A stretch of DNA of 64,000 nt from Macrostomum lignano (lineage: Eukaryota). Location: positions 124,001-188,000 of the forward strand of contig NIVC01002241.1 in assembly GCA_002269645.1 (NCBI GenBank), read 5' to 3'. Both the position numbers and the translations under genes were made by a program. Below are positions 8,189-57,100 of the stretch, in pieces; positions within the stretch are counted from its first letter, which is position 1; every line of letters begins with the position of its first letter. Under the pieces are notes generated by a model, which ran no database searches, was not told the origin of the DNA, and saw nothing but the letters and a program-made list of their open reading frames with translations.

Positions 8189-8216
8189 AGCTCCAAGCGC
8201 ACAGGGCTACACTTAC

Positions 8217-13380: not shown

Positions 13381-13384
13381 CTTG

Positions 13385-13902: not shown

Positions 13903-13903
13903 C

Positions 13904-13924
13904 TGGTGGTCAGCTAAGTGGGAT
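13904..13924 (+). promoter_or_regulatory. Primer-binding site, tRNA-Leu-like with 3 extra bases
   Basis: TGGTGgTCAGctAAGTGGGAT versus the tRNA-Leu complement TGGTGTCAGAAGTGGGAT (from memory); lies 1 nt after the LTR CA. Confidence 0.55.
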
Positions 13925-13970
13925 ATCGAAACGCCACAACCCATTCGACGAGTCGTTCAGAATCTACGCT

Positions 13971-15381
13971 ATGGCTTCAACTAATAATTCAACGGCCGCG
14001 GAGGCAACAGCTGACGCCGCAGGCCCCGACAATTCAGCAACGAGACCGACCTACGACGAGATGATTCGGGCGGTGACCGACGAGGTGCGACGGCGTTTGG
14101 AGCAGACCAGCCTGGGCCAGCCGCAGCACCATCACCATGTGTCCATGTGTACCAGCAGCCCCAGCAGCAGGATCGAGCTCCGGCACCAAAACCGGTCAAG
14201 ATTGAGCGGTACACCCAAAACCAGGAATTCGACGTCTGGATCCAGGCTCTCGAGGAGCGTTATGAGCTCAACGGGATCACAGACGACAGACGAAAGAAGG
14301 CGGAGGTCCTAGTGAATTTGGACATCGCCACAACCTATCCCGCAGTCGTCAGGATGGAGCTGCCAGACAACCTAACGTTTGGTGAGTTCAAACAGCGATT
14401 GTCTGAACGCTTTACCCATGTAGCCGACACGCTGGAGTACCGGGAGCAGTTTTGGAGCTGCCAGCAAGGCAAGAATGAGAGCGTTGACGACTACGGCGAT
14501 CGATTAATTGCTCTGGCCGATCGAGCGTTTCCGCACTTTACCCAGTTCAGAAGCAGGCTGAACTGGTGGATCAGTTCACGGTTGGAGTGCGAATCGCCCA
14601 GTCGGCCCGAGAACAGCTAATCCTGGTGAGACCGCAGAATCTGACTGCCGCGAGAAGGGATGTGCTACGCCTGGAGACAGCAGCTAGCCTGGCTCAGCGA
14701 GTAGCACCGCCGCCAGCAGCGAGACATGTACGGGTTCTCGAGAATGACGACAGTCAGACGCCCACTGCGGTGCAACACGACGCCAAGTCATCTCGGCCCG
14801 AGGAAAACTGGTTGCGTGAGGTGATGGAACAACAAGCGGAAACTCTGCAAGAGCAGCGACGAATTCTGGAAACCTTAAGCAACGAAATGCGAGAGTTCTA
14901 CTCTCGGGGATCGCGCGATAACGACGCCCCGGAGCCATGGGAACCAGCTCGCCATCAGCCGCGGGACTCGTGGGGCCAACGCTCCAGATGTTTGGCACCC
15001 CCAACTCCTCGCCGCAGCGCCGACGGAAGCGCCCAATTTACGACACCCGGCACACGTAATGTGCAGCATCAACAGTTCCATCAGCTTCAGCAACCGCGAG
15101 ACGGCAGCAACCCGCCGCCGAGGACACCGCCAGCAGGAGGTCAACGTCGACAACATCAGCAGCCGCAGCAGTCGCAGCAACAGACGAGTTTGCGCCCGCC
15201 GCCCTATCAGCTGCGGCGGCAGAACGCAATGTGCTACAGGTGCAATCGTGAGCATCGCAGCGATGAAAGCCCGCATCGACGGTTGGCCAGCACTGTGCCC
15301 CAGCAAAACGGCAGCTCGGGAAACGGGACGGCTGGACGCGCCATCGGGGGCAGCGCCATCCAGCAGCCGAGCCAGCACTAA
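13971..15381 (+). pseudogene. Gypsy gag, frameshifted
   Basis: ATG at 13971; capsid-like ERYTQNQEFDVWIQALEERYELNG; degenerate knuckle CYRCNREHRSDES. Split over three ORF-track frames. Confidence 0.8.
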
Positions 15382-18300: not shown

Positions 18301-19532
18301 GAGACCTCACCATCGCTAAAGTGCGCGAAAAATTCTGGCGACCTGCCCTGGCCAAGGCAGTGTCCGACCATGTCGCTTCCTGCCAGACCTGCACTTTAAG
18401 CAAAGGACGGCGACGAATTCCGGCGCATGTACAGTCGTTCCCGGTCTACGAAATCTATGGGCGATGCGCTATCGACATATTCTGGGCACCACTGGAGACC
18501 CGACAGATCGAGAAAATGAGTACATCCTGACCTACGTCGACACCACGTCGAAATACCCCTTCGCCTTCGCCATGAAGAACCAGCGCGCCAAAACAATAAT
18601 CACGCTCCTGCAAGAGCAAGTCTTTCCGATCACCGGAATCCCCGCTTGGATTCATTCGGATCAAGGCAAGCAATTCACAGGGCATGAGTTCCGACACTTC
18701 TGCGAAGTCTACGGCATCAGGCAGACGACGCCGCCATATTCGCCCTGGGCTAATGGACAAGCCGAATCATGCAATAAGAATATTAAGAAGGTGCTCACCT
18801 GTCTCCTAGAAGATCATCTGATCAACAGTGGGACAAGATGCTGCCAGCCGCTTTGACTGCACTAAGATCCGCCGTCAATCGTGCTACTGGTTTCTCGCCG
18901 CACTATGTTGTCTACGGAGTGCCCACCCTATCGACAACACCCTAGACCGCCTGGATGTATCGGCTGACCTCCCAGAGTACATTGCCAAGCATCAGCGCAG
19001 ACTGGCCGAGACCGAGCGTATTGTGCGACAGCGACTGAGAGCAGAGATCCAGCGCCGAGAAGAGTATTATGAGAACCGGCCGAGGCCAGCAGAACAGCAG
19101 CCAGGAGACCTGGTCTGCCTGGCCAACCCGAAGCTCGAGTTGGGAGAGTTGCCCAAGTTTCACCGGCCGTATAAGAGCATGTATAAGGTTGTTAAGAAAG
19201 TCGGAGAAGTCGCCTACTGGATCAAACCTGCCACCGCACGACGAGGACGCCCAGCCGAAGTGCTTGTACACCGGAACAACATCATCAAGGTGCCGCAAAT
19301 GATGGCCAAACGACCGCAGGAGCCGCAGCAACAAACTGAACGGCCAATTTTGCCCTACGAGTCGAGCGAGGAAAGCGAAGAGGACTCAGCTGATCAGCCC
19401 GCACCGGAACAGCAGGCCGCAGCTCAGCCTGATCTGCGAGGCACCCAACTATTCGAGCCGAGCCTGTGCCATCCTGAAGTGCTAGAAGACGATCCTGACC
19501 TGCCAGACATCGGAATGGAGGTCGAAATTTAA
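15324..19532 (+). pseudogene. Gypsy pol (protease, RT, RNase H, integrase) with premature stops and frameshifts
   Basis: FLLDTGS (about 15520); RT YLDDV; RNase H LDTDAS, KQELLA, TDN, NADGLS; integrase HHCC (LHDSPYCGH...CQTC), VDTTSKY, HSDQGKQF, NGQAES, GPY/F-like region. Stops at 16556 and 17330. Confidence 0.93.
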
Positions 19533-19680
19533 GGTAATTAACTGCGAAATTAACTAAGTGTGCTTTCTGCGAATTTGTATTTGCACACTACTGCCAGTAG
19601 TCTTATTTGCATCTGCGCTTGATTTATTCTGCCACTGTAAACCTTCTCTGCAGCTGCTAATGTGCTGAAGGTTAATTTAA

Positions 19681-19874
19681 AATTTTCTCTATTGTAAACT
19701 TTATGCTTGAGGGTAAAAGCAATTTTCTCTATTGTAAACCTTATGCTTGAGGGTAAAAGCAATTTTCTCTATTGTAAACCTTATGCTTGAGGGTAAAAGC
19801 AATTTTCTCTATTGTAAACCTTATGCTTGAGGGTAAAAGCAATTTCTCTTGTAATTATGCTTGAGGGTAAAAGC
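19681..19874. repeat. 40-bp tandem repeat (4 full plus 1 partial) in the retrotransposon 3' region
   Basis: Unit AATTTTCTCTATTGTAAACCTTATGCTTGAGGGTAAAAGC. Confidence 0.95.
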
Positions 19875-21796
19875 AGATTCTTTTAATGTAACCTTTTGCT
19901 TCTAACAAAAGCAATTTTATACTTTTCTCCTTAAGCTTTCCGGATAAAAGCTGCAATCTATTTATTTCTATGTGCTTATGCTTATACAATGCATTACAAT
20001 AAGCTGCACCCTTGCGCTCATATTTAGCCTTAGGCTTTCTGGTAAAAGCCTGCACAAATGTGTTCATATTTTTCCACATGCGATACATTATTTGTTGTGA
20101 ATATCCCTTTTTCTGTTCTACGAAATTTTGCCGTAAATTTCTCTGCGCATGCCCAGAGTGCTGAAAGTTTTATGCTCATCTCTGTAACATAACACTTGTC
20201 ATTTTCATTTTTTTGTAAACCCTCTTAGCTCCTTGTTCAAAGCTGAAGGAAATTTTTGTTCCACCTGCCAGTTTTTTGACTGCCCTGCCGCACCTGGGTC
20301 AGGCCCTCTTGTTCGAGGCTCTGTTCCTAGTGGGGGCATCTAAGGTGACTAGTGGCTCCTGATCTCTGTCTAGATTAAGCCTAGCCTGGGAAAATTCTTT
20401 TCCAGTGCCTTTTTCTCCTTTTGTTTGTAAAGCTCCTTATGGAGACCTGTTTGCTATTTTGGTTAGTATCTTAGCTATTCAGCTATTCCTATTATTAATG
20501 CTGGTTAGGAACCTCATTTTGCTATCTTATAGTCATTTGTCAAATTCTAACTTATGCTTGCAACTCTTTGTATTTTCCCATGCGACCCCCTTTTTGTGCG
20601 AGCCATTTGGGACCTTCTCAATTCATCGATTCGGTGTTCAGCCTAAAATGCACCCCTAACTTGTGGTTTACCATTTTATTGCCCCTTGATTTTCTCTCCA
20701 CTCCAATCTCCGGGCACGACCCTACTGGAGTGCATGAAGGGGGGTGTTTTTGTGTTTGGCTGTTTTCTGGCCCCTTTGTTTATTATCTGGCCTGCATAGA
20801 AGTATATAAGCATTTAATTTCACTGGGTTAATTTTCTGAATTTTTGTTTCTCTGGCCATCCAGCTAATAATCTGACACCCGATTTGTCCAGCTATATCAT
20901 TTGACAGTTAGTTTATTTTGCCTGACACACTTTGCTCCAGATTGCAAACAGCACCAAACATGTACAGCGACCCTATGTAGAATGGCGCATTAGCGCCTTG
21001 CCGAACTGGTTGCTAACTGTACTCGGTCAATTTGGACGAACTGCGACCCAAACCACTGGAGGCTGCTTATAGCCCAGGACTTGAGATCAATGGCTTCATG
21101 GAGGCAGTGTACAGAATGCCTGTGGCACCTGAGCCAGATCTAGTGCGGCTGCTTGAGCCAGACCACCATGAGACGCCCCCACCTCTACCATTGGCCTGGA
21201 CTAGCGAATCTAGTGACAGCCCTCGCGGAGCTCCAACAGCTGCCCCGCTGGTGACCCTGCGGCCCCTGCAGAAGCTCGGGCATAACATTTGGTGGAGCTA
21301 CTGCTCCTGGAAGCTGAAGGGGCCTCTGCCCAGCGACAAGCCAGCGATGGCCGGAATTGGACCCTATATGCCTAGCACTTCACCCCAGCTGACGTGACCT
21401 TGGTGCTCGATATGGTTGCTGCCGCTACCGCGGCCCGGCTTGGCGATGAAACCGAGGGGCAGCAAATTGGCCCGTGCTGCACGCTGGTGGTGCTAGCCAT
21501 CAATAACACTGCCACCCGCCACTGAGGGCTACCCCTGTCGCTTGAGCAACTTTGCTATGGTACCTATGTAGCCAGCGTGGCCCAAGCCTGCGGTCGCCCA
21601 AACCCAGCCACTACGACTAGCAGCTTAGAGACTAATGGTCAGGAGCCCGCCGCCTAACCTGCCACTTGGACACCAAACAGCTTGGTTGGTGGCACCTGCC
21701 TGGCCAACCAAGGTGGCCGAGCCATAGCTAACCGCGGTCGCTACCCTTAGACTAGAAGGTCTAATCATTCATCTCATGCCACGGCCTGCCGGCACA

Positions 21797-23398
21797 TGTG
21801 GTAGTTGTGGACTCCCACTAACAAATTTTTTAATATCATAGTAACATTTTTCAGACTCTCTCATTTGCCATTGCCCTGTTTCTGGCCCTATCTGTCTACT
21901 CCCTAGCAAAATCTATGATGTGTTTTGTCCCTCTTTCTGGAATAACTGCCCTTTTCTGGTTTTTTATGCCCTTCTCTAGTTTTTTATACCCTTTTTCTGT
22001 TCTGTTTGTTTTTCTTTGTGTATCTCTGTGGAACTTTTTGCTTGCCAAGTTCTGGGCCTTGATGTCCATGCCCTGTCCCCATTCTCTGGACCACTTTGCC
22101 TACCTTCTGCTCCTTTTTTGTTATTTAACTAGGCCTCTTTTTGCCCGTCTTTAAAAGCTCCCACCTCACTTGCTTGTCCCTTTTTTGTTTTTGTTCTTTT
22201 CCCTCTGTATTTTCTACAGAAACTTTTGCTTGCCAAGTTCTAGACCTCAGTGTCCATGTCTTGTCCCCATTCTCTGAGCCACTTTGCCCACCTTCTGCCC
22301 CCCTTTTTGTATTTATTTGGCCTCATTTGGCCTGATTCTGTAAAGCTCTTTTTTTTTCTTCTTGCTCTCCTCTACTATTAATTGCAGCTAGCTAATTTCT
22401 TTGCTTAGACTCATCTGATCTTTAATGTAAAGACTCATACCGCAGCTCCCCTGGCATCATTTATTGTCAAGTCAACCTAAACATTAATACTTTGCCAGCC
22501 TGCTAATAATAATAAAATGAACATCAACCTACTCAATATTTTTTGCTTAATACTTAATTGAGAGCACTAGCCTATCTTAAGTTATTTGCCTATGGAACGT
22601 AAAATAACCAAGTTCTTAACTCAAAGAGAGCCCTAAGAATTCAACGTTCCATAATATGTAAATTATGGTGGCAGCACTATTTTACTGATAGTAATAAGTC
22701 AAGCATATAAGGTCCATTAATTTCAGTGTCTAAGGACCCACTCTGAGCACTTGTGCCTATTGAAGACTGCTCATCTACAACTAAAACTACCCTCTCCCTA
22801 GAATTGAGAACCCCAGCAACCGGAGTATTCAAGACAAATTTTATTGATTTGTCTGGCATATTGCGAAGGTTTTCTGTGTACGCTGGACACATTTTTATTG
22901 AATTTTTAATTGTACGCCAATAGATTTTAAATGTAGGCCAACTTAAACAATGGTAAAAAAATCAACAAATATTTAAATTTAAATTTAAACTCCAAAAAAT
23001 TGATAACAACATGAGGATTATTGTGACAATTCCAATAATTAAAATGATTGGTAAATGAGAAAATAGTAGCAGAAAAAAATGGTTTTTGAAATAACTTGAC
23101 ACAGAAAAAGCACAAAAAAATCTTTATATTAACTTCTACGCCAGTTGCCATACACCAAACTGTATGCCACACTGTACACAGCCAAGAAATGTATGCTGGT
23201 ATACGCCACAGAAATCAAGTGTACGCTAGAATTTTCTGGCACACACTCCACCATCTGCAAAATGGTTTGTTTGTGCAATTTTCTAGATTTAATTTATGCA
23301 AACTCAATGCTGGCAATAATTCAAAAGTCAGAACCACCCCAATTTGGTGTCGAACCAAGCAACCTTAGACAAATTTTCATTTCTTCACCCCTACTTCA
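21797..23398 (+). repeat. Diverged 3' LTR-like copy carrying two extra segments (about 21950-22631 and 22856-23269)
   Basis: Starts TGTGGTAG, ends CCCCTACTTCA. Three blocks align in order to the 5' LTR, with many CG>TG/CA changes. Confidence 0.75.
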
Positions 23399-31662: not shown

Positions 31663-32295
31663 GACATTGGAACTAGATATCTGAATAGGGAAATATGTAT
31701 TCCATAGCCATATGATCTATCTATGTGTTCTATCTAAAAACCTATTAAATCTTTAACTTCCTATACTCAAATCAATAGCTACAATGAAATCTAGCAAAAC
31801 CTATAAAGATTCCAAATCAAATCCAAATCCAAATCAAAAGTGCACTTTAAGAAGCAACTTGTAAAAATGTAGAAATATACAACCTATAGTTTTTATGTAG
31901 TATTTTAATAGGATCTGAAAGTTTTGTTTTGTTTTTATAGAATACTATTAATGTATATTGCAATGTTTTAATTGCATGCATTTTAAATTAAAGATCTGGC
32001 ATACCACCAATTTGGTGGCTGTTTCAATTTGCTACTTTGTCCTTGGCCAATCAGTGACTTCATTCAATCTAGATATCAAGTCACTTTATAATTACAGTAA
32101 GTATACTTTTATTTTTGCAGTACTTATTTTTTCTTCAAGAATAGTAGTTAAAATTTAAATTGTGGTATTGCTTTAAATGAGGATAGATTATGTCAGTAAT
32201 AAATTTATTAAGCATTAGAATTTTTATAATTTAATTCTGTAAATTAGTAGTAAGAATAACAATGTTATAATTATAGGCAATATCTTACAAGGGGG

Positions 32296-32418
32296 CATCA
32301 CAAACCCGGAAAATTACATTCTCAAAAACTCTGATAAGCCCCATCATAAACCGACTGAATCCAAAATGTAGGCCACATCAGAGTTTTCAAGAATGTGATG
32401 TTTCGAGTTTATGATGAT
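32296..32418. repeat. Short degenerate fold-back element
   Basis: CATCACAAACCCGGAAAATTACATTCTCAAAAACTCTGAT is imperfectly inverted about 45 nt later. Confidence 0.5.
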
Positions 32419-32581
32419 GGGAGGTTCATTTCAAGGTTGTGTTTTTAGGGCTAGTGGTGGTGGCACCTTGTGTTGATATGTTAAACAAAAACCTAGGGAA
32501 AAATATAAGTGGATAAAAGAGAAAGAGGGTGAAAGTCTAACAAAAGTTGGTGGGTGAACACACAAAATAAGAAAAGACAGG

Positions 32582-32900
32582 TCAGAAAATCTTAAAGTAC
32601 ACTAGTGCCTCTGTTATATAGTTGGCTGTTGAGGGTAGGTTTAAGCTCTTTATGTACAATGCTTCTAAAGTTAGTAGCTTTCCACTGTATTGACTGTTGT
32701 CAATAATACTAAATTGGTAAATGTGCTTGCATTGGGTACAGTGGTTGCACATAAGAAGATGATCCTGTACAGCCGACACTTTTTTGAAATGTTCCTTGGC
32801 TCTTGTGCGTAAGTGACTCAATTTTGCACCTTACCTTAAACCAAAGTAAGAATCTTCAAATTTTGTCAAAAGTTGTTAAAAAAGTAATCAATTTTGCTAC
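32582..32900 (-). pseudogene. Penelope-like retroelement 3' fragment (GIY-YIG endonuclease C-terminus)
   Basis: HLRTRAKEHFKKVSAVQDHLLMC...FSII...LLTLEALYIKS, then after a frameshift KPTLNSQLY...KIF*, the typical PLE ending. Confidence 0.75.
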
Positions 32901-33090
32901 CTACCCTTGGTCTGCAACAATCTATGCTAGCCAGATCAGCTTGGTTGGCCTGGCAGTTGCGCATGTATGCTCTGAACAAAGAGACAGTCAGACGACGTGG
33001 ACCACTGCTTTTTCTCTTTCACTGGGATTTAGATTTTCAGCAAATCATAACTAACTGCAAACTAACTTGAATCCCATTGCCGCATCCCAG

Positions 33091-33384
33091 CGGTGCACCT
33101 GCTCCCCGATCGCAACTTGATTGCCGGCAGTCGCCTTACAATCAGCTGTGCAGTGAATTCAGATGCCGGCCTGTCATGGCTGCCCCTAATCTACGTTAGG
33201 CGTCTCAATCCGGAGGCTCTGTTTAATGCAACAATTGCACTAGATGGTCGATCGGCATTTGTTGTTATTGACAATGTCTCAGTGGCCGAGCATAATGGCA
33301 GCAATTATGATTGCGTCGGACAGGTTAGGACGAATGCCAGTCTGTACAAGGAGCTCAGCCTGCACAAGGAGCTGCTTGTTGGGT
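33091..33384 (+). CDS. gp130/Domeless-like receptor, Ig-like domain exon (signal-peptide exon not located)
   Basis: Acceptor catccCAG at 33090, donor GTAAGT at 33385, phase 1-1. Encodes LTISC...NYDC (Ig cysteine pair) ending LLVG. Confidence 0.75.
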
Positions 33385-33419
33385 GTAAGTTTTCTAAGGT
33401 CTTCTGGATTCTAATAATA

Positions 33420-33700
33420 GATTCGCAGGTTGGCTGTGTGATACGCAATTCTGCCCCTCTCTCCTCTCCCCTCCTCTCCCGTATGGTCTCCTGCTCTCCC
33501 AGCTTCACTCTCCCGCTCTCCCCTCCTCTGACCTCTCCACTCATCTCTCCACTCTCATCTTTCACCTTATCTCCCCGACCCCCTCTCACCTCTCCTCTCT
33601 CCTCTCCTCTTCCCTCTCCACTCTTATCTCTCCACTATCATCTTTCACCTCCTCTCACCTCTCCTCTCACCTGTCTCTCTCCCCTCCTCTTCCCTCCAGA
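33420..33700. repeat. C/T-rich low-complexity tract in receptor intron
   Basis: Degenerate CTCTCCTCTC/CTCTCACCT repeats. Confidence 0.8.
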
Positions 33701-33855
33701 TATTTGGTCCGTGAGTTAAAATGGTTTGCTGACCCCAGGTTTAGAGTTTAGGTTAAAACCATTTCCGCTTAGGATTTCTAGATTAAAAAGCCTTTCAAAT
33801 CATCAATACTATGATATTTTCGCAAATTCCCAAATGTCAACAATGGCCCTTGCAG

Positions 33856-34006
33856 ACAAGCCCGCAATGCCCGACTTCAAATTCTACTGGCTGGACCGCA
33901 AAGCTTTCACATCGGTAGCGGAGCCGCCGCTAGCCGAGGTGCAGCGCCGGGCCGGCCTGCCGCCTCCAGACGGTCGGCTGACGCTGCGGGTCTGGTATCG
34001 CGACTT
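33856..34006 (+). CDS. Receptor exon (start of first FN3-like module)
   Basis: Acceptor ccttgCAG at 33855, donor GTGAGT at 34007, phase 1-2. Splice gives G-YKPAMPDFKFYW. Confidence 0.72.
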
Positions 34007-34159
34007 GTGAGTGCAGATTGCTAGTCAGCTGAGTCAGCTTTTTAATATAGTCAGTGTAATTACTCAGTGTGTACAGCTGTTGCATCATTCCTATCTTCTC
34101 CACTTCATATGGAGTCAATTGCTAAGCTTGTCGAAGACATGAATTATGAGATGTAAGTG

Positions 34160-35210
34160 TCGGTGATATGAAGTGTCGAAGCTATGAAGTATCGAAGATA
34201 TGAGGTGTTGGAGATATGAAGTGTCGGAGATATGAAGTGTCGGAGATATGAAGTGTTGGAGATATGAAGTGTCGGAGATATGAAGTGTCGGAGATATGAA
34301 GTGTTGAAGGTATGAAATGTCGGAGATATGAAGTGTCGAAGCTATGAAGTATCGAAGATATGAGGTGTTGGAGATATGAAGTGTCGGAGATATGAACTGT
34401 CGGAGATATGAAGTGTCGGAGATATGAAGTGTCGGAGATATGAAGTGTCGGAGATATGAAGTGTCGGAGATATGAAGTGTCGGAGATATGAACTGTCGGA
34501 GATATGAACTGTCGGAGATATGAACTGTCGGAGATATGAAGTGTCGGAGATATGAAGTGTTGGAGATATGAAGTGTCGGAGATATGAAGTGTCGGAGATA
34601 TGAAGTGTTGGAGATATGAACTGTCGGAGATATGAAGTGTCGGAGATATGAAGCGTCGGAGATATGAAGTGTCGGAGATATGAAGCGTCGGAGATATGAA
34701 GTGTCGGAGATATGAAGTGTCGGAGATATGAAGTGTCGGAGATATGAACTGTCGGAGATATGAAGTGTTGGAGATATGAAGTGTCGGAGATATGAAGCGT
34801 CGGAGATATGAAGTGTCGGAGATATGAAGTGTCGGAGATATGAAGTGTCGGAGATATGAACTGTCGGAGATATGAAGTGTCGGAGATATGAAGTGTCGGA
34901 GATATGAAGTGTTGGAGATATGAAGTGTTGGAGATATGAACTGTCGGAGATATGAAGTGTCGGAGATGTGAAGTGTCGGAGATATGAACTGTCGGAGATG
35001 TGAAGTGTCGGAGATTTGAAATGTTGGAGATGTGAAGTGTCGGAGATATGAAGTGTCGGAGATTGATATGAACTGTCGGAGAAATGAAGTGTCGGAGATA
35101 TGAACTGTCGGAGATATGAAGTGTCGGAGATTGATATGAACTGTCGGAGAAATGAAGTGTCGGAGATATGAACTGTCGGAGATATGAAGTGTCGGGGATA
35201 TGAAATGTTA
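34160..35210. repeat. 16-bp minisatellite, about 65 copies, intronic
   Basis: Unit GAAGTGTCGGAGATAT with GAACT and GTTGG variants. Confidence 0.97.
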
Positions 35211-36306
35211 GAGAGATAGTGTCAGAGATCTCACACCTTTTGCTCGTATATATTGTATTTAGAGTTATTATTTATTTATTCTTGCTCAAATACTAAGTGC
35301 ACAATGTCTTCTTGTTTCAGTGCAAGCCATAAAATATCCTGCGATTCCGGGTGTCAAAAGTACATTGATGCACTTTTGAATTTTATTACCAAATTAATAA
35401 ATTTATAATTAAGATCTGCACTCGGCCATAGACGATGAAGCCAGTCAAGCGGACAGCTGGCAATTCCATAGCAAGTATTCTGACCGCAGAACTGATTCAC
35501 TTGATTGTCTATGGTGCCGAGTGCAGTTCTGTGGCAGTGGCTGCTGCTCCACTTGATCCGCCACTTTGCTGACAAAAAGCAGTAGTATATATCGCGTATC
35601 ATTAAGCAGTAGTTTTTGACCGCGTGATTCTGCTATAAGCAAATACGAATAGACGCTATAATTACTTGATCCACATGCTGAATGCATTTTACTTAAGTTT
35701 TTCTGTATGTTTGTGACATAGACACAGATTTTTACACAATTTTAAAGTAAGAGCCCATTTTTGAGTGACAATTTGTGGCTTATTTTTCAGTTTTGAGCAC
35801 AGATGCTAAAAAAACTAGATGGGCGACGCCACTCAGGCTTATATAGTTAATAAAACAGCTTTCTGCTTTCAGTTCAGTAGCAAAGAAGAATACATAAGCT
35901 ATTTTATAAAAATAAAGGCAGCTGAAATAACTTTGATAAGTTTAGAAGCCAAAGCTTGCAGACGTAAACAACTTGCTAATTGGTTCAGCAATAATGTACA
36001 TTAGCCAGTCCACTGAAATGTACATGGCAGCTTTAGGCTGGAATTCCAAGAAAGGCAATAAAAATTGGGGCGGGGCGGGGGGTAATGTGGACGGGCGCGG
36101 TTGGAGTGTTTAAGCTGGGGGTAAGACTAAGAGCTAATAAATGAGCCATGGCTTTATGAATATATTAAATGCTTCCATTTAACTTACTACTGAACTGAAA
36201 GTAGCATACACGCAAATGTGCTGAGTGGCCCATCTAGTTGTTCTAGTATTTGTGGTTGGCAGAAGCCAATAAAAACTCAGGCTTTGTTTTACTACCTTAG
36301 ATGGGT

Positions 36307-36375
36307 GGGCCGTAGCCCAGGGCTCCAGCGCGGCGCTCTGATGCGCCAGCGGCCCAGGCTCGATTCCAAGTGCAG
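36307..36375 (+). mobile_element. Second tRNA-like head (possible SINE) in receptor intron
   Basis: GGGCCGTAGCCCAGGG (A-box-like), stem GGCGC/GCGCC, GGCTCGATTCC (B-box-like). Acceptor stem not completed. Confidence 0.4.
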
Positions 36376-36671
36376 TCAGTCACATTAATTTGGAGCTATA
36401 TTGAAATATCGGCTTGGCTCTGCTTGTGAAATTAACGGCCTTGAGGGCCAACCCCCAAGGCACGGTGAAGTGTACATGCCTAGCGATAAATAAAGTCAGG
36501 GTCGTATCCGCGCGCCTGCTCAGGGGAGTCGGGGGGGGGGGGAATGAGCAGTAATGTCTGTCATAAAAAATACTAACGTAGACAAAAAACCTTTTTAAGC
36601 AGCGAAAATTTAAATGAAAAAGTTCAACTTTTGAACTATTTCTTTTCACTGCTAATGCTCATTATCCGCAG

Positions 36672-36913
36672 GTTCACGGGTCCCGAGGGTCGGAATTGTA
36701 CAAAAACAACAACCGCCACTATTGATATTAGTGGCCATAAAAGTTCTACTCCAGTCTGTAACGACAGCTGCGCTTGCAACAGCTTGGGCAACTGCGACTG
36801 GGGGAATAAGTGCCAGACGGGTCTTGAGGACGATATGGAAGTTTTTGCTGAGCTGTGCAACAATATTGGCTGGTGCACCAACGCCACTTGGAAATTTGAT
36901 CGGCGGGATAAAG
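36672..36913 (+). CDS. Receptor exon (Cys-rich end of first FN3/CBM module)
   Basis: Acceptor atccgCAG at 36671, donor GTTGGT at 36914, phase 2-1. MEVFAELCNNIGWCTNATWKFD resembles gp130 IEVWVEAENALG...INFD. Confidence 0.75.
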
Positions 36914-37094
36914 GTTGGTTTTTTGCTGGAAAAACTTATTTTATTATCGTTTTCTGTAAATTAATATGTGAAATAGCGCTCATAGCTATTTTGAAGCATA
37001 TCTTTTTAATTTATGCCAATAGACACTTTCTAAAAATCACACCTCTTTGTAGAGTAGTTATGGGATTATTATTGAAATAAAGCCACTGACTTAA

Positions 37095-38250
37095 TTGTAG
37101 CTTTGGGATATTTTAGGTGAAATCCCGTTCCATTGTAGCTTTGGGATATTTTAGGTGAAATCCCGTTCCATTGTAGCTTTGGGATATTTTAGGTGAAATC
37201 CCGTTCCATTGTAGTTTTGGGATATTTTAGGTGAAATCCCGTTGCATTGTAGTTTTGGGATATTTTAGGTGAAATCCCGTTGCATTGTAGTTTTGGGATA
37301 TTTTAGGAGAAATCCCGTTCCATTGTAGTTTTGGGATATTTTAGGTGAAATCCCGTTCCATTGTAGCTTTGGGATATTTTAGGAGAAATCCCGTTCCATT
37401 GTAGCTTTGGGATATTTTAGGAGAAATCCCGTTCCATTGTAGCTTTGGGATATTTTAGGTGAAATCCCGTTGCATTGTAGCTTTGGGATATTTTAGGAGA
37501 AATCCCGTTCCATTGTAGCTTTGGGATATTTTAGGAGAAATCCCGTTCCATTGTAGCTTTGGGATATTTTAGGAGAAATCCCGTTGCATTGTAGCTTTGG
37601 GATATTTTAGGTGAAATCCCGTTGCATTGTAGCTTTGGGATATTTTAGGAGAAATCCCGTTCCATTGTAGCTTTGGGATATTTTAGGAGAAATCCCGTTG
37701 CATTGTAGCTTTGGGATATTTTAGGAGAAATCCCGTTGCATTGTAGTTTTGGGATATTTTAGGAGAAATTCCATATCCATTGTAGTTTTGGGATATTTTA
37801 GGAGAAATCCCGTTGCATTGTAGCTTTGGGATATTTTAGGTGAAATCCCGTTGCATTGTAGCTTTGGGATATTTTAGGAGAAATCCCGTTCCATTGTAGC
37901 TTTGGGATATTTTAGGAGAAATCCCGTTGCATTGTAGCTTTGGGATATTTTAGGAGAAATCCCGTTCCATTGTAGCTTTGGGATATTTTAGGAGAAATCC
38001 CGTTCCATTGTAGCTTTGGGATATTTTAGGAGAAATCCCGTTGCATTGTAGCTTTGGGATATTTTAGGAGAAATCCCGTTGCATTGTAGCTTTGGGATAT
38101 TTTAGGAGAAATCCCGTTGCACTGTAGCTTTGGGATATTTTAGGAGAAGTCCCATCTCCATTGTAGTTTTGGGATATTTTAGGAGAAATTCCATATCCAT
38201 TGTAGTTTTGGGATATTGTTAGAGATCCGATCCCATAGTTATTTTGGGAT
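37095..38250. repeat. 38-bp minisatellite, about 30 copies, intronic
   Basis: Unit CTTTGGGATATTTTAGGAGAAATCCCGTTCCATTGTAG. Confidence 0.97.
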
Positions 38251-38322
38251 ATTGTTAGAAGTCCCATCCACACATACTGAGTTGTTTTCAACTTCCCTAA
38301 TCCTGTAATTCCCCACGCGCAG

Positions 38323-39686
38323 AGAAGCCGCTACCAGTTGGCGGCCTTCGCGCCAACTTTCAGTCCAACAGCCGCCTTGTGGTGAGCTGGGAGAGTCCGA
38401 CCGTTACAACATCGGATCAGAACTACACCTACAGGGTGGATATTTTGACATCCGCCCAGCAACTCGTTGCCACCCAGATTAGCAACCATACCAGCTTGGC
38501 ATTCAACAACACCTACAGCTTGCTGCGCCACGGTGAGCAGTTCAATATTCGAGCAGTTTGCCAGCCTCGCTACTATGCAGGCTACGACTCCGATCCCATT
38601 GTGGAATCATTCGTGTCTCCCGAATCGGCGCCGTGCGCGCCTCCGGCTCTGGTGCTGACGGCGCCAAGCGAGAATTCTATCGGCGCCGCTTTGCCACCGT
38701 TGCATTGTCGCAACGGTCGCATTCGCCAGTTTGTGGTTAGCGACACCGGCTGGGGGAGAAACAGCAGCGTTACTGTCGGCAAGCAGGTTGAGTTTGTTGC
38801 CTGGCAACCGGAGCGGCATCAGCTGGTTGCTGGTTTTGAGAAGCTGCGAGTCGCCGCGGCCACCAGCGTCGGTGTTGGGCCGCCAGCCGTTGGCGCCGTT
38901 GAAATCGCCTGGCTGCAGGACTGCGCTCTGCAACCGCAGTCAAGCAGTTCGCCTGCGCCAGCTGACGAACTGCTGGACATCACGGATCGCCTTGGCAGTC
39001 GGCGAGTCTTCGTCTGGTCTGGCAGCAGCGCCGACCGGCCCGAGATCGTCGCCTGCGAGAAGTCGGCATTGTCCGGCGACAGTCTGGCAGAGTGCCAGCG
39101 AGTCTGGCTGCTGAATGGGACATTGTTAGCGAGCTCGGACGGGCTGCCAGTGGACACTGTTGGGACCAATCTGACTGTCCGGTTGGCTCGCTACGGGGCC
39201 GGCCGGCCCGCTTGCCTGTGCCACCTGGTGGACGGCGGCTCCACTATGCAGCCGGAAATTTCCGTTATTGAAGAGAAGAATTCGCTGTTGACACTGGCGG
39301 AGACCAGCTGCCGCGGTCACTTGCATATTGAGTCCTATTGGATTCGGCCGGTGGGTGGTGGCTCCAACTCCAGCATCCGGTGCAGCAGAGACCGCGCCTT
39401 GCCCAGACGAATTCACTGCCGCCTGCCGCCGTTGTCTGACAGTTTCAATTATGGAACTTCCGGCCGCGCTGGCATTGTCGAGGCTCGGTCTGGGCGGCAT
39501 TTGATTTTTCGTTCGCAGAAGAGATGGCGATCAAACAGTTCAATGGAGTGGTCGATGACAATTTGGCTCATTTGCATCGGTCTGGCTGTTGTCCTGATTG
39601 CTAGTCTCTCTTTCGGTTGCTATCTATGCTGTCGTAACCGCGCTCCAATTCCGCCAGCCTTGGATGAGAAATATCCCCTCCCAGAG
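38323..39686 (+). CDS. Receptor large exon: FN3 modules, transmembrane helix and juxtamembrane region
   Basis: Acceptor cacgcgCAG at 38322. Encodes EKPLPVGGL..LVVSWESP, FNIRAVCQPRYYAGYDSD (WSxWS-position-like), NGRIRQF..VAAATSVGVGP, TM WSMTIWLICIGLAVVLIASLSFGCYLCC, then RNRAPIPP. Donor GAG|GTGGGC at 39687. Confidence 0.82.
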
Positions 39687-39873
39687 GTGGGCATTGTGTT
39701 TTTTATCTTTTTTTACCTGTTGCTTTATGCTTATGGAAACAACAAACAGTGAACAAATATCAAGACAGGGAATATCAAACTTATATTTGAGGCTGTTTAT
39801 TACTTATAGTAACGTGTTACAAATAGTATATAAGGATTATTTATTTATCACATTCTTCAATTTTCTTATCCAG

Positions 39874-39979
39874 ATGCCACTACTCAAAAACTCGCAGCGG
39901 CAGGCCGCCTCTAGCAATCCGGTCACTGACGATACTCGGCTCACGCCCAGTGCGGGTTCGGCCACACAAAACGGCCACG
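39874..39979 (+). CDS. Receptor cytoplasmic exon
   Basis: Acceptor ttttcttatcCAG at 39873, phase 0; donor GTCAGT at 39980 (or read-through to TGA at 39985-39987). Confidence 0.65.
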
Positions 39980-39994
39980 GTCAGTGAACTTGCT

Positions 39995-40640
39995 ACTTAT
40001 AGTAGGGTACACTAGTTATTGGTGGGGTGTTTCTATTTATAGTAGGTTGTTTCTACTTACTTATAGTAGGATGTACTATTCATAGTAGAATGTTACTACT
40101 TATAATAGGGTGCCCTACCTACAGTAGGTTGTTTCTACTTACTTATAGTAGGATGTACTATTTATAGTAGAATGTTACTACTTATAGTAGGGTGCCCTAC
40201 CTACAGTAGGTTGTTTCTACTTACTTATAGTAGGATGTACTATTCATAGTAGAATGTTACTACTTATAATAGGGTGCCCTACCTACAGTAGGTTGTTTCT
40301 ACTTACTTATAGTAGGATGTACTATTCATAGTAGAATGTTACTACTTATAATAGGGTGCCCTACCTACAGTAGGTTGTTTCTACTTACTTATAGTAGGAT
40401 GTACTATTCATAGTAGAATGTTACTACTTATAATAGGGTGCCCTACTTACAGTAGGGTCTTTCTATTTATAGTAGGGTGTTTCTACTTATAGTAGGGTGC
40501 ACTACGTACAGTAGGGTGTACTACTCATAGTAGAATGTTTTTAATAATAGTAGGGTTACTACTTATAGTAGCATGTTTTTAATCATAGTAAGGTGCGTTA
40601 CTTATTGTAGCCTGCACTACTTATAGTAAGATGGTCATAC
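39995..40640. repeat. Higher-order minisatellite (82-bp unit built from about 20-bp TAGTAGG monomers), intronic
   Basis: TAGTAGGATGTACTATT recurs at 40064 and 40146 (period 82) and onward; degenerate monomers at both ends. Confidence 0.88.
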
Positions 40641-40736
40641 ATTTAGTAAAGTGTACAACTTTTATTAGTGAGAGCTAAACTGTTTTAGACTTTCGTATTG
40701 CAAAATTTTTAATTGCAATTCAAAAAAACAATTCAG

Positions 40737-40834
40737 TTGATCACTGCTCGCCGATCTACACGGCCGGCTACAGCCCGAGAACGCCGCTGCAATCACCTAC
40801 AGCATCACACGAGAACTTACAGCATTCTGTATAG
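40737..40834 (+). CDS. Putative terminal receptor exon containing tyrosine motifs
   Basis: Acceptor aattCAG at 40736. The phase-1 join gives VDHCSPIYTAGYSPRTPLQSPTASHENLQHSV*. Confidence 0.5.
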
Positions 40835-46400: not shown

Positions 46401-46930
46401 AACTTCAGCTTTCTTTAGATTTTTCATTTCATTTATGTGTAAAGCATATCAGACTTTGCTGTACTCTTGCATAAATATTATATATTTTATTGTTTGTGTT
46501 GGATTGCAAGGTAATAGCTATTGTAATGATTACAAAGTTTAGTAAAATATAGATTAGACAGTTATCCATATTTGGAAGAGTTAATAGAAAAGGAAAATAT
46601 TGAGAAACGAATAATTAAGATAAAGGTGTAAAAGAGCAACTGCAAAGTAATCAAGTAACTGCAAAAAATCTGAAAGCGAAATTAAACTGTATGCAATACA
46701 GTAAAACTAATAAATATGTCTGATTTTCTTTGCCTCATAGTCACTAGGACTATGGTCAGGTCTGATGCAAGTATTTTTGGTCAAAGTCAAAGTTTTGGAC
46801 CTTTCCCCAGAAAGCTGCAAACCCATTCTTATCCAAACTACTAGCATACCCTGAGCCTTAACTACTACAAGTAGCGTAAAAGCAAATCTACTTAACAAAC
46901 TCGACATCCCCCCTATCACACTTAAAACAG

Positions 46931-47475
46931 CAGGCGACATGTCTGGCCAGATGAAAGCCGCCTACGACATGGGCGACCTTGGCGGCGATGCGGCATCTGC
47001 CGGCTACGGTGGCGGCGGCGGCGGCCGCGCCTCGGCCTACCTTCGCCGGCGCGGATTCGGCTGGCTAATGGAAGTTGAAGAAGACGATGAGCAGCAGAAA
47101 CCGCTGCTAGAAGAGCTGGACATTGATCCCACTGATATCTATTATAAGCTGCGCTGCGTACTGCTGCCACTGCCTTACTTCGGCTACGATAGGCAGGTTG
47201 TTCGCGACAGGCCGGACTTCTGGGGTCCGCTGTTTGTTGTGCTGCTGTTTGCTCTGGTTGCCATGGTTGGCCAGTTCCGGGTCGTGTCCTGGATACTCAC
47301 CATCTGGCTGGCCGGCTCCTGGTTTGTCTACGTGCTGGCCAGATCGCTCGGAGGCGAGGTCAGCTATTCCCAGAGTCTGGGCGTCATCGGCTATTCGGTG
47401 CTGCCGCTGCTGCTTGTTGGCCTGCTGCTGCCGCTCGCTGCTAAAGTGCACGGGCTGGTTGGCTTCGCCTGCAAG
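46931..47475 (+). CDS. YIPF4: YIPF4 (Yip1-domain Golgi/ER protein) exon 2
   Basis: GFGWLMEVEEDD..KPLLEELDID..DIYYKLRCVL..RQVVRD.PDFWGPL..GQFRVVSWILTIW..GGEVSYSQ.LGVIGYS; donor AAG|GTGAG at 47476. Confidence 0.95.
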
Positions 47476-47509
47476 GTGAGCGAGTGTTAACTGTGCTGGG
47501 CTGAGGCTG

Positions 47510-52473: not shown

Positions 52474-52859
52474 TTAAACGGACAGAATGAGAGCCACAAT
52501 GAAGCCGTACAGGCCCAGCACCTCGGCAAAGATCAGGATGAGGATCATGCCGACGAACAGGCGCGGCTGCTGGGCGGTGCCGCGAACCCCGGCATCGCCA
52601 ACAATGCCGATGGCGTAGCCGGAGGCCAAACCACTGAGGCCGACGGCCAGGCCGGCGCCGAGGTGACGGAGCGACTTCTCAACGGTGTAATCAGGCGTCA
52701 TGTTCTGTGAGATGAGCACAGCAACTACTAAGCCATAGATGGCGATGATACCGGCCATGACAACTGGCACCACGGACTTCATGATGAGCTCGGGTCGGAG
52801 CACCGCCATGTTAGCGATGCCAGTGCCAGACTTGGCTGTGCCATAGGCGGCGCCCAGAG
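52474..52859 (-). CDS. ATP6V0C: V-type proton ATPase 16-kDa proteolipid subunit c, exon 2
   Basis: [12 protein letters not shown]...[23 protein letters not shown]...[35 protein letters not shown]; acceptor tgtgCAG at 52860. Confidence 0.97.
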
Positions 52860-54165
52860 CTGCACAACGTGCGAGTGTGGGGGATTGAGTGAGCAATGCA
52901 AGTCAGTTAGAAACGCATACCTGAGTTGGCTTAAAATGTGAAATTTTACTGTAACCTAATTGGATTAGATATAAATATTTTTTTGCAATTTATATTTGAT
53001 AATAAGCATCAATAATTTCAGATTTATTGGAATTCTTGAGTTTTCAAAACTTCTATGCCTAGCAATATAAAAGGCAGGGCAAAGATTTTGTTATTCCATT
53101 TGATTTAGATTTTTTTGACTGATGAAAGCTAGTATTCAAGCTCTCAATTTGGCATCCTACTCAGGCACTGTGATTCTGCAGCTTAAATAATGTGGCTTGT
53201 ATGTAACTTTTTACATCAGTGGTAAATAGTATGTTCTGATAGTCTGGTAATATTGATAAGCACTAAGGCATGACATATACATGTAGCATTTGGGAATCAA
53301 CTAATCATATAGAAATGACCAACTAAAAGAACTATCTGAAGTGAGCAACTTAAAAACCTATTAGGGTATCTAATTATAAGAAATAATTATCTATTCAACC
53401 ACAGAAATAATAAATAAAACTAAAGACAAAACAATATAACTGGCAAGGGGCCCAGCCAATGTAAGTCACAAAAATGCCCACCTAAAAATAGATATAAAAC
53501 TAATTAGATAACAAAACATTTAGCCTTAATAATATAGTCCCCTAGACAACCCACCTCACTTAACAACATATACAGGGTCTCCGCAACCTGGAAAAACCTG
53601 GAAATGCAAAGAAACCTGGAAAAACCTGGAAACGCCCCAAAACAGAAGAAAAAACCTGGAAATACACCAATGTGGGAGGGGAAACCTGGAATTTATCATT
53701 CTTCCTATGATCTGTGTAATGTGAAACTGGAAATAGACTATAATTTAGTAATGCATGCCATTATGCTATATGATGTGATAGAAACTTTGGTGTTAAAAAT
53801 GCTGCTACCATGTCATAGTATGTTACAAATACAACCTCTCCTGTATAGTTATATTCTTATTAAGTTGTATATTTATAGCAAAAGTCTTTTATTTTATACT
53901 TTTAATTTTGTTCTTCAGTTAGTATAATACAAGAAATAAATAATCTAGATTTAATCAATCTACAAGACTCTATAATTGTAATGTCTTGACATTTCTTCAG
54001 ATAGATGAATTTAGTAGAAGCAGTTCATATTATGTAATGAAGACAGTTTGTTTTATATAGTGTAGAGAATTGTATGAGGTTTACTTGAACCTGGTATTCT
54101 ACGATCTACTAGCTTTCCTGAATTTTTCTTCTAGCACTGAGCACTGCGCTATCACAGTCCCGATC

Positions 54166-57100
54166 ATGTCAAGGTTCTTGGATGCTTGGCTGAATGCCAT
54201 CTGTTTTCTACAATATGTAACCTTTTTAAAGAAGGCACCAGGGGATTCAGCTGCTGCTTTTTGTGCTGTCTGCAACAAAAAATTCAAGCTGAGCAACATG
54301 GGCAAAGCTGCAATTGATAGCCACATGCGCCAGTCAACACATGTAAAGAATGCCACTGCTGTGAGTTCCTAGTACAGTGTTTGTACAATGCTGTCATCAT
54401 CTCAGCAGCAGTCACAGAAGCCCAAGGATGGTATCAGCGACACTGTGGAACCATCTACAGCAACAGTTACGGTTCAAGAACAATTAGTAGCACTTCAGCA
54501 ACCACAGCAATCTACTGTCCTTAAGTTGAACTACTTCACTAGGGAGGCTGTCCTAAAGGCTGAAGTCACGTGGGCATTGTTTTGTGCTGAAAAAAAACTA
54601 CACCATGCGTTTGGCTAATGGGCTGCCAGAAACATTTCAAGATATGTTTCCTGATAGTGAAATTGCTAAGCACTTTTCATTGTGCCGAGACAAGGTATGT
54701 AATTGTTATGTATTTTGTGTAATCATTTTTAACCTAGTTAAAAATTAATGCAAAATTAAAGTTAAAAACCCTACTCTACATCCATTCCAACAGATTGGCT
54801 ACATGCTGAAATTTGGACTCACTCCATTCTTCAAGCAAGAGCTGCGCTAGAACCTGGCTGCCTATACCGACATCGTAGTTTGCTATGATGAGGCTCTAAA
54901 CAAGATTACACAAGAGTCAAATGGACATTCATGTTCGATTCTGGGATAACAAACGCCATCAGGTTCAATCCCAGTATCTTGGATCTGCTTTTTTAGGCTC
55001 AACCAAGGTGGAAAACCTGCTTGAAGCACTTGAGTCCATCTTAAAAAACCTGCCACTTTCATCCATACTACAAGTATCAATGGACAGTCCAAATGTAAAT
55101 TTAAAGACTCTACGACTGCTGAAAGGCAAAATTTCTGCTATTCCTGAAAGCCTGGTTCCTGTCAAAGCTGGGACATGCGGCTTGCATACCCTCAGCCAAG
55201 CTTTTCAGTGTGGCCATGCTTCAACTTCATGGGAGCTCAACAGATTTTTGCAAAGCTTATACCCGCTTCTTAAGGACTGTCCAACACGTCGAACTGAGTA
55301 CATTTCTCTCACGAAAGCTAACGACACCCAATTTCCACTGAAGCTTTGCCTTGTCTGCTGGCTAGAGAATTCTCCTATGGCTTCACGAGCAATTGCCATT
55401 CTGTCTAACCTTAAGATGTGGCTCCGGAAAGCAGCAGTGAGAAAAACATTTATTGTAATATCTTAATTATCTACAGTAGCCAAAACATATGTATGTTTAA
55501 ACAGAATTGGAGCTGTCAAAACGCTTTAAATTTAAGGTCAAAGGCGAAGGAAGTCAACTGATGGGCGAGATTTGCGATGCGTGCAAGGATCCGCTTCTTT
55601 CAACTAAGCTCCAATTCTTCCGCAGTGTTTTGCTGCTTCTTGAGCCATTCTTACTCGAATTTCAGACAAAGAAGCCAATGTTTGTCTTTCTCTATGAGAA
55701 GCTAAGCGTCATCGTTCTTACTGTTGGTCACTTTTTTTGAAGCCTGAGGTAAGTAGGTAATTCAATGCAGCCAACTGACTTCAACTGTAGTTCCATAGTA
55801 TATATATTGTCTTATTATTTTACACAACAGATTGTCACCAAGGCTTCCATGTTGGATCTGGCGAATTTGGAACTCGATAAGGCTGCTTTGCCAGCAAAGT
55901 TAATTGACATTAGATTCGCCACACAAAAAGAATTGGGTGTTGCTCTCGCTGAGAAGACAATTTCAGAGCAGGACAAACTGAAATTCCTTTTGGAATGCAA
56001 GCAGTTCTACTGCAAGTTGATTGAAAAACTTCTAGAGAAGTTGCCTCTTCGATATCCAATTGTTTGCGGAGCTAGCTCTCTCTCGCCAACACTCATTTGC
56101 AGCTCTCCAGAAGTCAGCCAACAGTGCTTTCGGATGCTACTTATGGACCTATGGACTGTTATGGACTGTTCAGAGAACAATGGCCGCATTAATGCCATGA
56201 GTGAGCAAGTAGACACGCTCTACTGGAACCTGCTTGCTGGTGCAGAAGCCACTGCAAGTGTGCTTCACGGCTTGCAGCTAGCAGCCAGGGATGCGCTCTG
56301 GAAGCCAATAAGCATGGCAATGCCATTATTGAAAGTGGATTTTCTGTGAACAAGGACTTGCTGGTGCCTAACCTCCTGCAGGATTCTTTGGTGTCCTGCG
56401 CCAAGTCCAGGATGCTATAACAGTAGCTGGTGGCCGCAAGAACATCTTACTCTCCAAAAATCTCCTATCTAGTGTCAGAATGGCCAGGCAGCGTTACCGT
56501 GATGCCTTGGAGAAAAAACGAGATGAGGAGAAATTGAACACAGTGGTCACCATATCCCAGAATAGAAAAGCGACTGACGAGATTTTCTGAATCAAACAGG
56601 AGCTTGAAGCTAAGCGACGTGCTCTTTGGCTGAAGAGACAGAGGCCAGTGTTGCCACTGAGCATTGTGACAAAAAAATGCTGACAGAAAAAAATAACACA
56701 GGGCTTAACACAATGATTAATAACAACAATAACAGTTGAAGACCAACCCCACCTAGAAATACCAAAGTGATAATTAACCAATAAAGAGACTGAATAACAA
56801 TTGGAATGACAACTCCTTTTCAATGTTCAATAGCGTAGCAGTCATAGTATGAGCGTAGTGAGTAGTCATTTTTTTTCTTTTTTGGAACATTCGGGAACGA
56901 ACAAGCAAAGCATGCTCTGCCTGTCCTTTCAATCTGGCAGCTTCCTCGGCTGTGCATTGGATGACATTGTCCATGGCACGCTGTTTGATTACCAGCCAAT
57001 CCTATGCAAATTGTGTCAGGTGCATGGCAATGTCCTGGTCTTTCCCTTGCGCCTTGCACAACCTCTCAATCGCTAGCTGAACTTCTCTTTTTACAGTCAG

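Follow-up and report, generated by a model that had tools for sequence, protein, structure and literature searches.

Does a free-living flatworm encode a receptor of the gp130 type? Cytokine receptors are notoriously hard to find beyond vertebrates and insects, and in the literature that we searched no class I cytokine receptor is described in flatworms. The question is raised by one locus of Macrostomum lignano. The window is the whole stretch of DNA that was analysed, 64,000 nucleotides of contig NIVC01002241.1 (assembly GCA_002269645.1, positions 124,001 to 188,000 of the forward strand), and coordinates below are positions in it unless another contig is named. An earlier reading made without database searches (the sequence-only reading) had proposed a gp130/Domeless-like type I cytokine receptor at 33091-40834. 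The window contains there an intact seven-exon gene on the + strand, 31976-40834, which encodes a type I membrane protein of 791 amino acids (aa). This window gene and its paralogs probably form a divergent cytokine-receptor-like family, in which the second and third extracellular domains (D2+D3) would be a remote homolog of the gp130-type binding module; kinase-coupled signalling is the part that we infer. Homology of D2+D3 to the gp130-type cytokine-binding module has fair but not overwhelming support from sequence profiles and a predicted structure. We speak of a cytokine-receptor-like family and not of a canonical member because the strict class I signatures, YXXQ and Box2 fail. The sequence is already public as an unnamed FN3 protein; the interpretation is the new part.

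Gene model and protein architecture

All six exons proposed at 33091-40834 are present with consistent phases. Every intron is of the GT-AG type, the acceptors are pyrimidine-rich and end in CAG, and the intron phases 1, 1, 2, 1, 0, 1 are mutually consistent. The six downstream exons can be joined in a single way if only canonical splice sites are used and the frame is to stay open. The signal-peptide exon, which was still to be found, lies upstream of the proposed range. The parts of the gene are listed below; a slash marks the exon boundary at a donor, and TM stands for transmembrane.

31976-32096, + strand: exon 1, ATG and signal-peptide-like MHFKLKIWHTTNLVAVSICYFVLGQS..., donor A/GTAAGT, phase 1, joined to 33091
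33091-33384, + strand: exon 2, Ig-like domain D1 with Cys60...Cys115, phase 1-1
33856-34006, + strand: exon 3, first half of D2 (N-terminal fold of the homology region), phase 1 in, 2 out
36672-36913, + strand: exon 4, second half of D2 with C198, C230 and a Cys-rich insert, phase 1 out
38323-39686, + strand: exon 5 as a whole, D3, D4, D5-D6, TM and juxtamembrane segment, uninterrupted by introns from D3 through TM
38323-38630, + strand: exon 5 part 1, D3 (C-terminal fold of the homology region), beginning EKPLPVGGL
38631-38933, + strand: exon 5 part 2, FN3 domain D4, CRNGRIRQFVV ... ATSVGVGPP
38934-39560, + strand: exon 5 part 3, D5-D6, a beta-rich, Cys-containing ectodomain of about 210 aa, alignable with paralog P0009
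39561-39632, + strand: exon 5 part 4, TM helix IWLICIGLAVVLIASLSFGCYLCC, aa 683-706
39633-39686, + strand: exon 5 part 5, juxtamembrane RNRAPIPPALDEKYPLPE, Box1-like, donor gag/GTGGGC
39588-39686, + strand: 99 nt, alternative intron stretch, treated as an intron in all three public models, donor gct/GTTGTC
39874-39979, + strand: exon 6, cytoplasmic tail, MPLLKNSQRQ...ATQNGH
40737-40834, + strand: exon 7, end of the tail, IYTAGYSPR at 40754-40780, stop TAG at 40832-40834

The F-G strands of D2 in exon 4 read MEVFAELCNNIGWC...KFDRRDK. The end of D3 is FNIRAVCQPRYYAGYDSDPIVES (38541-38609); it stands at the position of ...RC...GYWSDWS, and the degenerate form of WSXWS there is DSDPI. Except for one splice choice, the spliced product is identical to the M. 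lignano entries A0A1I8J4V3, A0A1I8GRC0 and A0A1I8FXI5 (P0001-P0003), which bears out the flatworm origin that the sequence-only reading had thought probable. These are uncharacterised predictions with the public label "Fibronectin type-III domain-containing protein". Exon 1 is also in P0001 and P0003, there without its Met. In class I/II receptor genes, phase-1 introns lie between domains and a phase-2 intron splits the first fold of the cytokine-receptor homology domain (CHD). The window gene has the order signal -1- Ig -1- D2a -2- D2b -1- D3, which would match that reference pattern.

The protein runs from a signal peptide through the Ig-like D1, D2+D3, the FN3 domain D4 and about 210 aa of further ectodomain to one TM helix and an 85-aa tail, the layout that the sequence-only reading had described. 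Its TM helix (aa 683-706) is the sole 19-residue hydropathy peak above 1.6. All 16 N-glycosylation sequons (N-x-S/T) lie in the ectodomain, N-terminal to the TM helix. Signal peptide, single TM helix and extracellular sequons are those of a type I membrane protein, and the predicted product is established as a single-pass, secretory-pathway, glycosylated receptor-like protein that carries no enzymatic domain. With D1 as Ig, D2+D3 collinear with the gp130 CHD and D4 as FN3, the topology is Ig - CHD - FN3 - TM.

A further exon with a kinase or phosphatase domain had been considered as a possibility that would speak for another kind of receptor. None is found downstream: the stop lies in exon 7, and the next open reading frames (ORFs) are those of Yip1 and V-ATPase c. 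This short terminal motif is also where the proteins of the paralogs end. A receptor protein tyrosine phosphatase (RPTP) or a receptor kinase is rejected because no catalytic exon follows; the 85-aa tail ends at TAG 40832-40834.

A paralog family in M. lignano

A HMMER scan of 1.84 billion representatives returned relatives solely from M. lignano, in two paralog groups. P0004/P0008 (PAA65088/PAA80294) are about 610 aa long and match with E 1e-23; P0007/P0009 (PAA94799) are 814 aa long and match with E 7e-7. Together with the window gene there are three paralog groups, about 28-30 % identical and alignable from the Ig domain to the C-terminal tyrosine motif. The paralogs begin with signal peptides. 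Two Ig-repeat proteins that were matched through D1 (P0005 and P0006) were set aside as unrelated Ig similarity.

Cysteines and the WSXWS position distinguish the three groups. C198 and C230 are invariant across all of them. In P0009 the start of D2 carries a C-x11-C pair; the window gene shows F148 and T/S at these positions. At the WSXWS position the paralogs have SGHWSDNS and NSGWSEPS, compared with YDSDPI in the window gene; in their wider context they read RCRPRHFSGHWSDNS and SCRPKYF..GWSEPS, of the form W-S-x-x-S only. Of the three, the window copy has eroded furthest: the first disulfide and both WSXWS tryptophans are lost. Its assignment is transitive because it rests on paralogs that keep the signatures better.

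One exon of the paralog locus holds D4, the TM helix and the juxtamembrane motif together. This locus, on contig NIVC01001685.1 (GCA_002269645.1), carries two tandem receptor copies, 10001-13438 and 16892-21816, about 80 % identical in the D4-TM exon, and the NCBI protein PAA65088 fuses exons of both copies into one model. Near-identical copies of the window gene also exist at other M. lignano loci; the differences are few and mostly conservative, and the frame is kept. Against this background it is very improbable that the window gene is a functionless, decaying duplicate (an incipient pseudogene in a genome that underwent recent duplication): the degenerate family hallmarks, the several near-identical copies, the transposons around the locus and the satellites filling its introns would suit such decay, but the 791-codon frame is intact over seven exons with canonical splice sites and is preserved in the copies elsewhere.

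Similarity of D2 and D3 to the gp130 cytokine-binding module

A profile of the three paralogs, covering the signal peptide through D4, matches gp130 in the PDB with E 3e-5, from the end of D2 across D3 into D4. IL-12p40, PRLR, EPOR, IL-13Ra2 and IL-4Ra follow after gp130. HMMER pairs the profile consensus 'levtaelCnrlgWCstaayefDrRdkekPsPvrkL' with gp130 'IEVWVEAENALGKVTSDHINFDPVYKVKPNPPHNL', and the consensus 'eysvevsCrPryfagywsdpsee' with gp130 'EYVFRIRCMKEDGKGYWSDWSEE'. This is the same register in which the motif parallels (KFD...KEKPLP, and GYDSD at the WSXWS position) had been drawn by eye. D4 is aligned with an FN3 domain of Robo2 and with the beginning of gp130 D4.

The profile of D3 alone finds the leptin receptor best (E 1e-5) and matches both of its WSXWS-bearing domains. 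The next matches are titin, ROS1, IL-12p40, EPOR, IL-31RA, PRLR and gp130 D3. About 38 of the 51 matches are class I receptors, and among these the domain matched is always the one that bears WSXWS. The family-specific sequence signal lies mainly in the end of D3.

For profile-profile comparison small profiles of gp130 D1, D2 and D3 were built from gp130 fragments of about 200 aa, so that the matrix covers gp130 D1-D3. In hhalign, D1, D2 and D3 each fit best with the cognate gp130 domain, the D1 and D2 matches being insignificant alone. D3 aligns with gp130 D3 at a probability of 71.5 % (E 3.6e-5), compared with 0.2 % for D4. D2+D3 aligns with the gp130 module end to end over 186 columns (probability 81 %, E 1.2e-5, score 41.4), and C198 and C230 fall on Cys3 and Cys4 of the gp130 cytokine-receptor homology region. 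The controls for the score of 41.4 are much lower: 14.7 for the reversed sequence, 12.7±2.1 for 40 column shuffles (maximum 17.4) and 10.9 for D4-D6 of the protein itself. Homology of the CHD to accepted members is statistically supported at the level of the family profile and depends largely on the D3 end.

Folds were compared by means of a predicted structure. An AlphaFold model from the single sequence P0001 (mean pLDDT, the predicted local distance difference test, 33.6) was set aside. The model used here was made from a five-sequence alignment and a stretch of P0001 identical to the spliced model. In a Foldseek search of this model (mean pLDDT 52) against the PDB, gp130 D1-D3 ranks first with E 5.6e-9 and TM-scores are 0.3-0.5. 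The best 50 matches of this mediocre model include 43 cytokine receptors, 40 of class I and three of class II. The sequence-only reading had called for such fold and profile-profile comparisons. As for its claim of a diverged class I cytokine receptor, gp130 and class I receptors are indeed the best specific matches by profile-sequence, profile-profile and fold comparison, but the textbook signatures and YXXQ fail.

Observations against a cytokine receptor

A considerable number of results weigh against this reading. The window protein alone gives sub-threshold matches only, in Pfam to fn3 (E 0.009) and LIF-R_Ig-like (E 0.011) and in the PDB to integrin b4 and titin, and no cytokine receptor. 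The top PDB match of the three-paralog profile is Robo2, on D3-D4 with E 2.3e-5, and titin scores about equal to gp130. When the last ~25 residues of D3 (C.P...WS..S) are removed, the preference for cytokine receptors is gone and titin FN3 leads. D2 is matched poorly: its profile alone finds nothing in the PDB, and hhalign with gp130 D2 gives E 0.056. The profile of D1 finds generic Ig domains (CD276, PirB, SYG-2, PECAM, E down to 7e-6), and the LIF-R_Ig-like hint for D1 was dropped. Neither the window protein nor either of the paralogs matches CX9-10CXWX26-32CX10-15C, the class I pattern of the first fold (PMC1963337); of its cysteines only the equivalents of Cys3 and Cys4 are kept (C198 and C230, spaced 31 residues apart), and P0009 has C-x11-C...C-x17-C. 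Strict WSXWS occurs in none of the paralogs, with the window gene (DSDPI) furthest from it. The five-sequence AlphaFold model has a mean pLDDT of 51.8, with 73-85 in D3, 50-70 in D2 and below 45 in D1 and D4. Seven of the best 50 Foldseek matches are generic FN3 tandems, contactin, fibronectin, titin, CD45 and LAR among them, with E only about 10-100-fold behind. Neither the exhaustive HMMER scan nor a word-index search with the paralog profile found homologs in other species. In the tail, the Box1-like PxP is unique to the window paralog, and all three public models splice the Box1-like motif out. YXXQ is the STAT-docking tyrosine motif in gp130 and Dome; the 85-aa tail holds no YXXQ, no YXXV and no recognisable Box2. 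Finally, a survey did not detect JAK, STAT or IL6R-type receptors in Platyhelminthes, in a text that contradicts itself on JAK (PMC13203501).

These points are what one would expect of a generic Ig/FN3 adhesion or recognition molecule, in which the likeness to cytokine receptors would come from the general similarity among FN3 domains, with a WS..S-like turn that two paralogs acquired by chance or convergence, and cytokine-type signalling would play no part. To Robo2 at the top of the PDB list, and to the loss of receptor preference with the D3 end, it can add titin, ROS1, neogenin and Tie2 among the D3 matches, the generic D1, the undetectable relatives of D2, the sub-threshold fn3 of Pfam and the failing strict signatures. 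We judge this explanation unlikely. The score of D2+D3 with gp130 is far above that of shuffles and above that of the protein's own other FN3-like domains, and Cys3 and Cys4 are aligned as well as invariant. The D3 profile picks the WSXWS-bearing domains of receptors with several FN3 domains, including both in the leptin receptor. Foldseek places gp130 D1-D3 at the top of its list, and the modules follow one another in the signature order of Dome and gp130 (PMC1963337).

Cytoplasmic tail, splicing and possible signalling

The proline-rich RAPIPP begins 3 residues past the TM helix, directly after it as the sequence-only reading had stated. Of this Box1-like stretch, a proline and ...D.(K/R)Y(P/I) are retained in the paralogs while PxP is not, and the public splice form lacks the motif. 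The tail has three tyrosines, in KYPLP, IYTAG and GYSPR, so that both distal motifs noticed earlier (YTAG and YSPR) are present. Near the C-terminus the distal tyrosine motif has the form GYSPR in P0009 as in the window gene, and GYVSR in P0008. The recurrence of this motif and of the juxtamembrane ...D.KY(P) among the paralogs argues for constraint on the tail.

The public models use an early donor at 39588, which deletes 33 residues in frame, namely the second half of the TM helix and RAPIPP...KYPLPE. We prefer the long splice form for three reasons. The early donor gct/GTTGTC is a weak site and gag/GTGGGC is much nearer to the consensus; the deleted juxtamembrane stretch has residues common to both paralog groups; and in the paralog locus TM and motif are uninterrupted in the exon of D4. 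The early-donor splice (39588-39686) may be either a mistake repeated across the annotations or a real isoform that is short or soluble.

A second explanation accepts the homology to cytokine receptors and makes the window protein a non-signalling chain. It would modulate the better-conserved paralogs as a decoy, by dominant-negative pairing, or as an isoform that is soluble or only weakly anchored; soluble gp130 and Drosophila Latran/Eye transformer are comparable cases. Such a role deserves consideration as a sub-hypothesis because erosion has gone furthest in the window copy (DSDPI, no first disulfide) and because all three public models drop, in frame, half of the TM helix together with the Box1-like motif. 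For the fly pathway, short receptors that act as negative regulators are documented (PMC2914635, PMC4751595). For the gene as a whole this role appears quite unlikely, given the poor donor on which the short form depends, the fact that the paralogs share the juxtamembrane ...D.KY(P) and the distal tyrosine motif, and the single exon that contains TM and motif in the paralog locus.

For a signalling receptor of the cytokine-receptor-like family the following mechanism may be proposed. A secreted protein would serve as ligand and bind at the elbow between D2 and D3, perhaps with a contribution from D1. The ligand would cause the receptor to dimerise and so juxtapose the non-catalytic tails. A cytoplasmic tyrosine kinase, already bound to the membrane-proximal Pro/...D.KY(P) motif, would then phosphorylate the tyrosine of the distal G-Y-x-x-R motif to create a docking site.

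Comparison with known receptors

Liongue and Ward give 'Ig-CHD-FBN-TM-Box 1' as the signature topology of Dome and gp130, and they accept members that break the rules, such as GHR with a variable WSXWS and CLF-3 with no cysteine motif (PMC1963337). The flatworm protein shares with gp130 (IL6ST) and the tall group (G-CSFR, LIFR, OSMR, IL-31RA, leptin receptor, IL-12Rb) the order of modules and a tail free of enzymes. With gp130 it also shares Cys3 and Cys4, the D2-D3 junction ...FD....KP.P(V/P).L, and the F strand 'v.C.P' followed by the WSXWS position. Unlike gp130, the window gene has lost the first disulfide and has DSDPI in place of WSXWS. The flatworm protein has a 31-residue Cys-rich insert between Cys3 and Cys4, a D1 that is not recognisably of the gp130 type, a D5-D6 region that is not recognisable as FN3, and an 85-aa tail that differs from that of gp130 in having no Box2, YXXQ or YXXV. 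No ortholog relation to gp130 is demonstrable, the homologs being confined to M. lignano.

The WSXWS of Domeless, the Drosophila receptor, is incomplete. Like the flatworm protein, Domeless is an invertebrate receptor of the archetypal Ig-CHD-FBN-TM-Box1 topology (PMC1963337); the two are compared here by topology, and Domeless was not among the PDB matches. Domeless and its short partner Latran/Eye transformer also resemble the M. lignano family in their small lineage-specific duplications, which include a regulatory short chain. Dome signals via Hop/STAT92E, whereas a JAK partner in flatworms is hypothetical.

The short class I receptors (prolactin, growth hormone and erythropoietin receptors) are similar in that their second fold is matched by the D3 profile, and P0008 VRCRPRHFSGHWSDNS resembles the F-G region of PRLR. 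They differ in having neither an Ig domain nor an FN3 stalk next to the membrane, and both Box1 and Box2 are present in their tails. Generic proteins with FN3 tandems (Robo, contactin, LAR-type RPTPs, titin) resemble the flatworm protein in D3-D4, which aligns with Robo2 FN3 (E 2.3e-5) and matches titin FN3. However, these proteins show no alignment with D2 and no WSXWS-type end, and the flatworm protein, unlike them, has no phosphatase, kinase or long Ig array.

JAK/STAT context and significance

A 2026 survey traces IL6R-type receptors only to molluscs and lists nothing for flatworms (PMC13203501). A study of mussels recovered JAK, STAT and SOCS without any receptor, and class I receptors are acknowledged to be elusive in spiralians (PMC3308963). 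A planarian STAT homolog (stat5) is reported (PMC8797187). The supplements of two M. lignano papers contain no JAK or STAT entries, and in the literature on Macrostomum, planarians and schistosomes, work on flatworm kinomes included, we found no clear statement on JAK/STAT.

Parasitic flatworms and planarians are thought to lack an Ig-CHD-FN3-TM receptor. A tentative extension of our reading, which we regard as possible rather than probable, is that Macrostomum, a flatworm that branched off early, has retained and locally expanded the archetypal Ig-CHD-FN3-TM receptor, and that it may be coupled to a kinase/STAT module, or to a kinase other than JAK via the family-specific tail motifs ...D.KYP and G-Y-x-x-R. 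If true, these would be the first class I receptors of platyhelminths, and cytokine-type control of neoblasts, regeneration or immunity would become open to direct test. M. lignano is amenable to RNA interference and transgenesis, which offers a handle on cytokine-like signalling in stem-cell control and regeneration. A gp130-related flatworm family would extend the archetypal Dome/gp130 receptor to Platyhelminthes and would show how far WSXWS, the first disulfide and YXXQ can erode. The relevance is to comparative immunology and regeneration biology; no new mechanism is involved.

Genomic surroundings

The window is AT-rich, repeat-laden DNA with GC-richer exons. The introns of the receptor gene at 34155-35208, 37094-38222 and 40025-40639 consist mostly of tandem satellites (16 bp x65, 38 bp x30 and 82 bp x5-6), and the intron stretch 33440-33700 is a CT-rich low-complexity tract. 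Neighbouring genes or exons, and the ORFs of a retroelement, are as follows.

4812-5420, + strand: universal stress protein domain
15956-16555, + strand: reverse transcriptase of a Ty3/gypsy-type element
16559-17329, + strand: RNase H of the same element
18320-18853, + strand: integrase of the same element
46855-47487, + strand: Yip1 domain
52477-52902, - strand: V-ATPase proteolipid subunit c

The Ty3/gypsy-type retroelement as a whole occupies 13800-19600 on the + strand, has a gag-like ORF, and its frames are broken by stops or shifts. A mariner/Tc1-type transposase ORF of 402 aa, with helix-turn-helix and DDE domains, lies at 329-1534 on the - strand. At 8604-11639 on the - strand a 1012-aa ORF, with CCHC zinc-knuckle-like motifs at its start, runs through a long strand-skewed repeat; the + strand of this repeat is rich in purines, with a GC skew of about +0.5, and several of its frames translate as 'GREREAEK...'. 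The adjoining GC-rich periodic repeat at 6988-8425 is open in several frames on both strands. Long ORFs of up to 401 aa at 54061-56587 and 58609-60312, both on the + strand, have no Pfam match and may be transposon-derived or lineage-specific.

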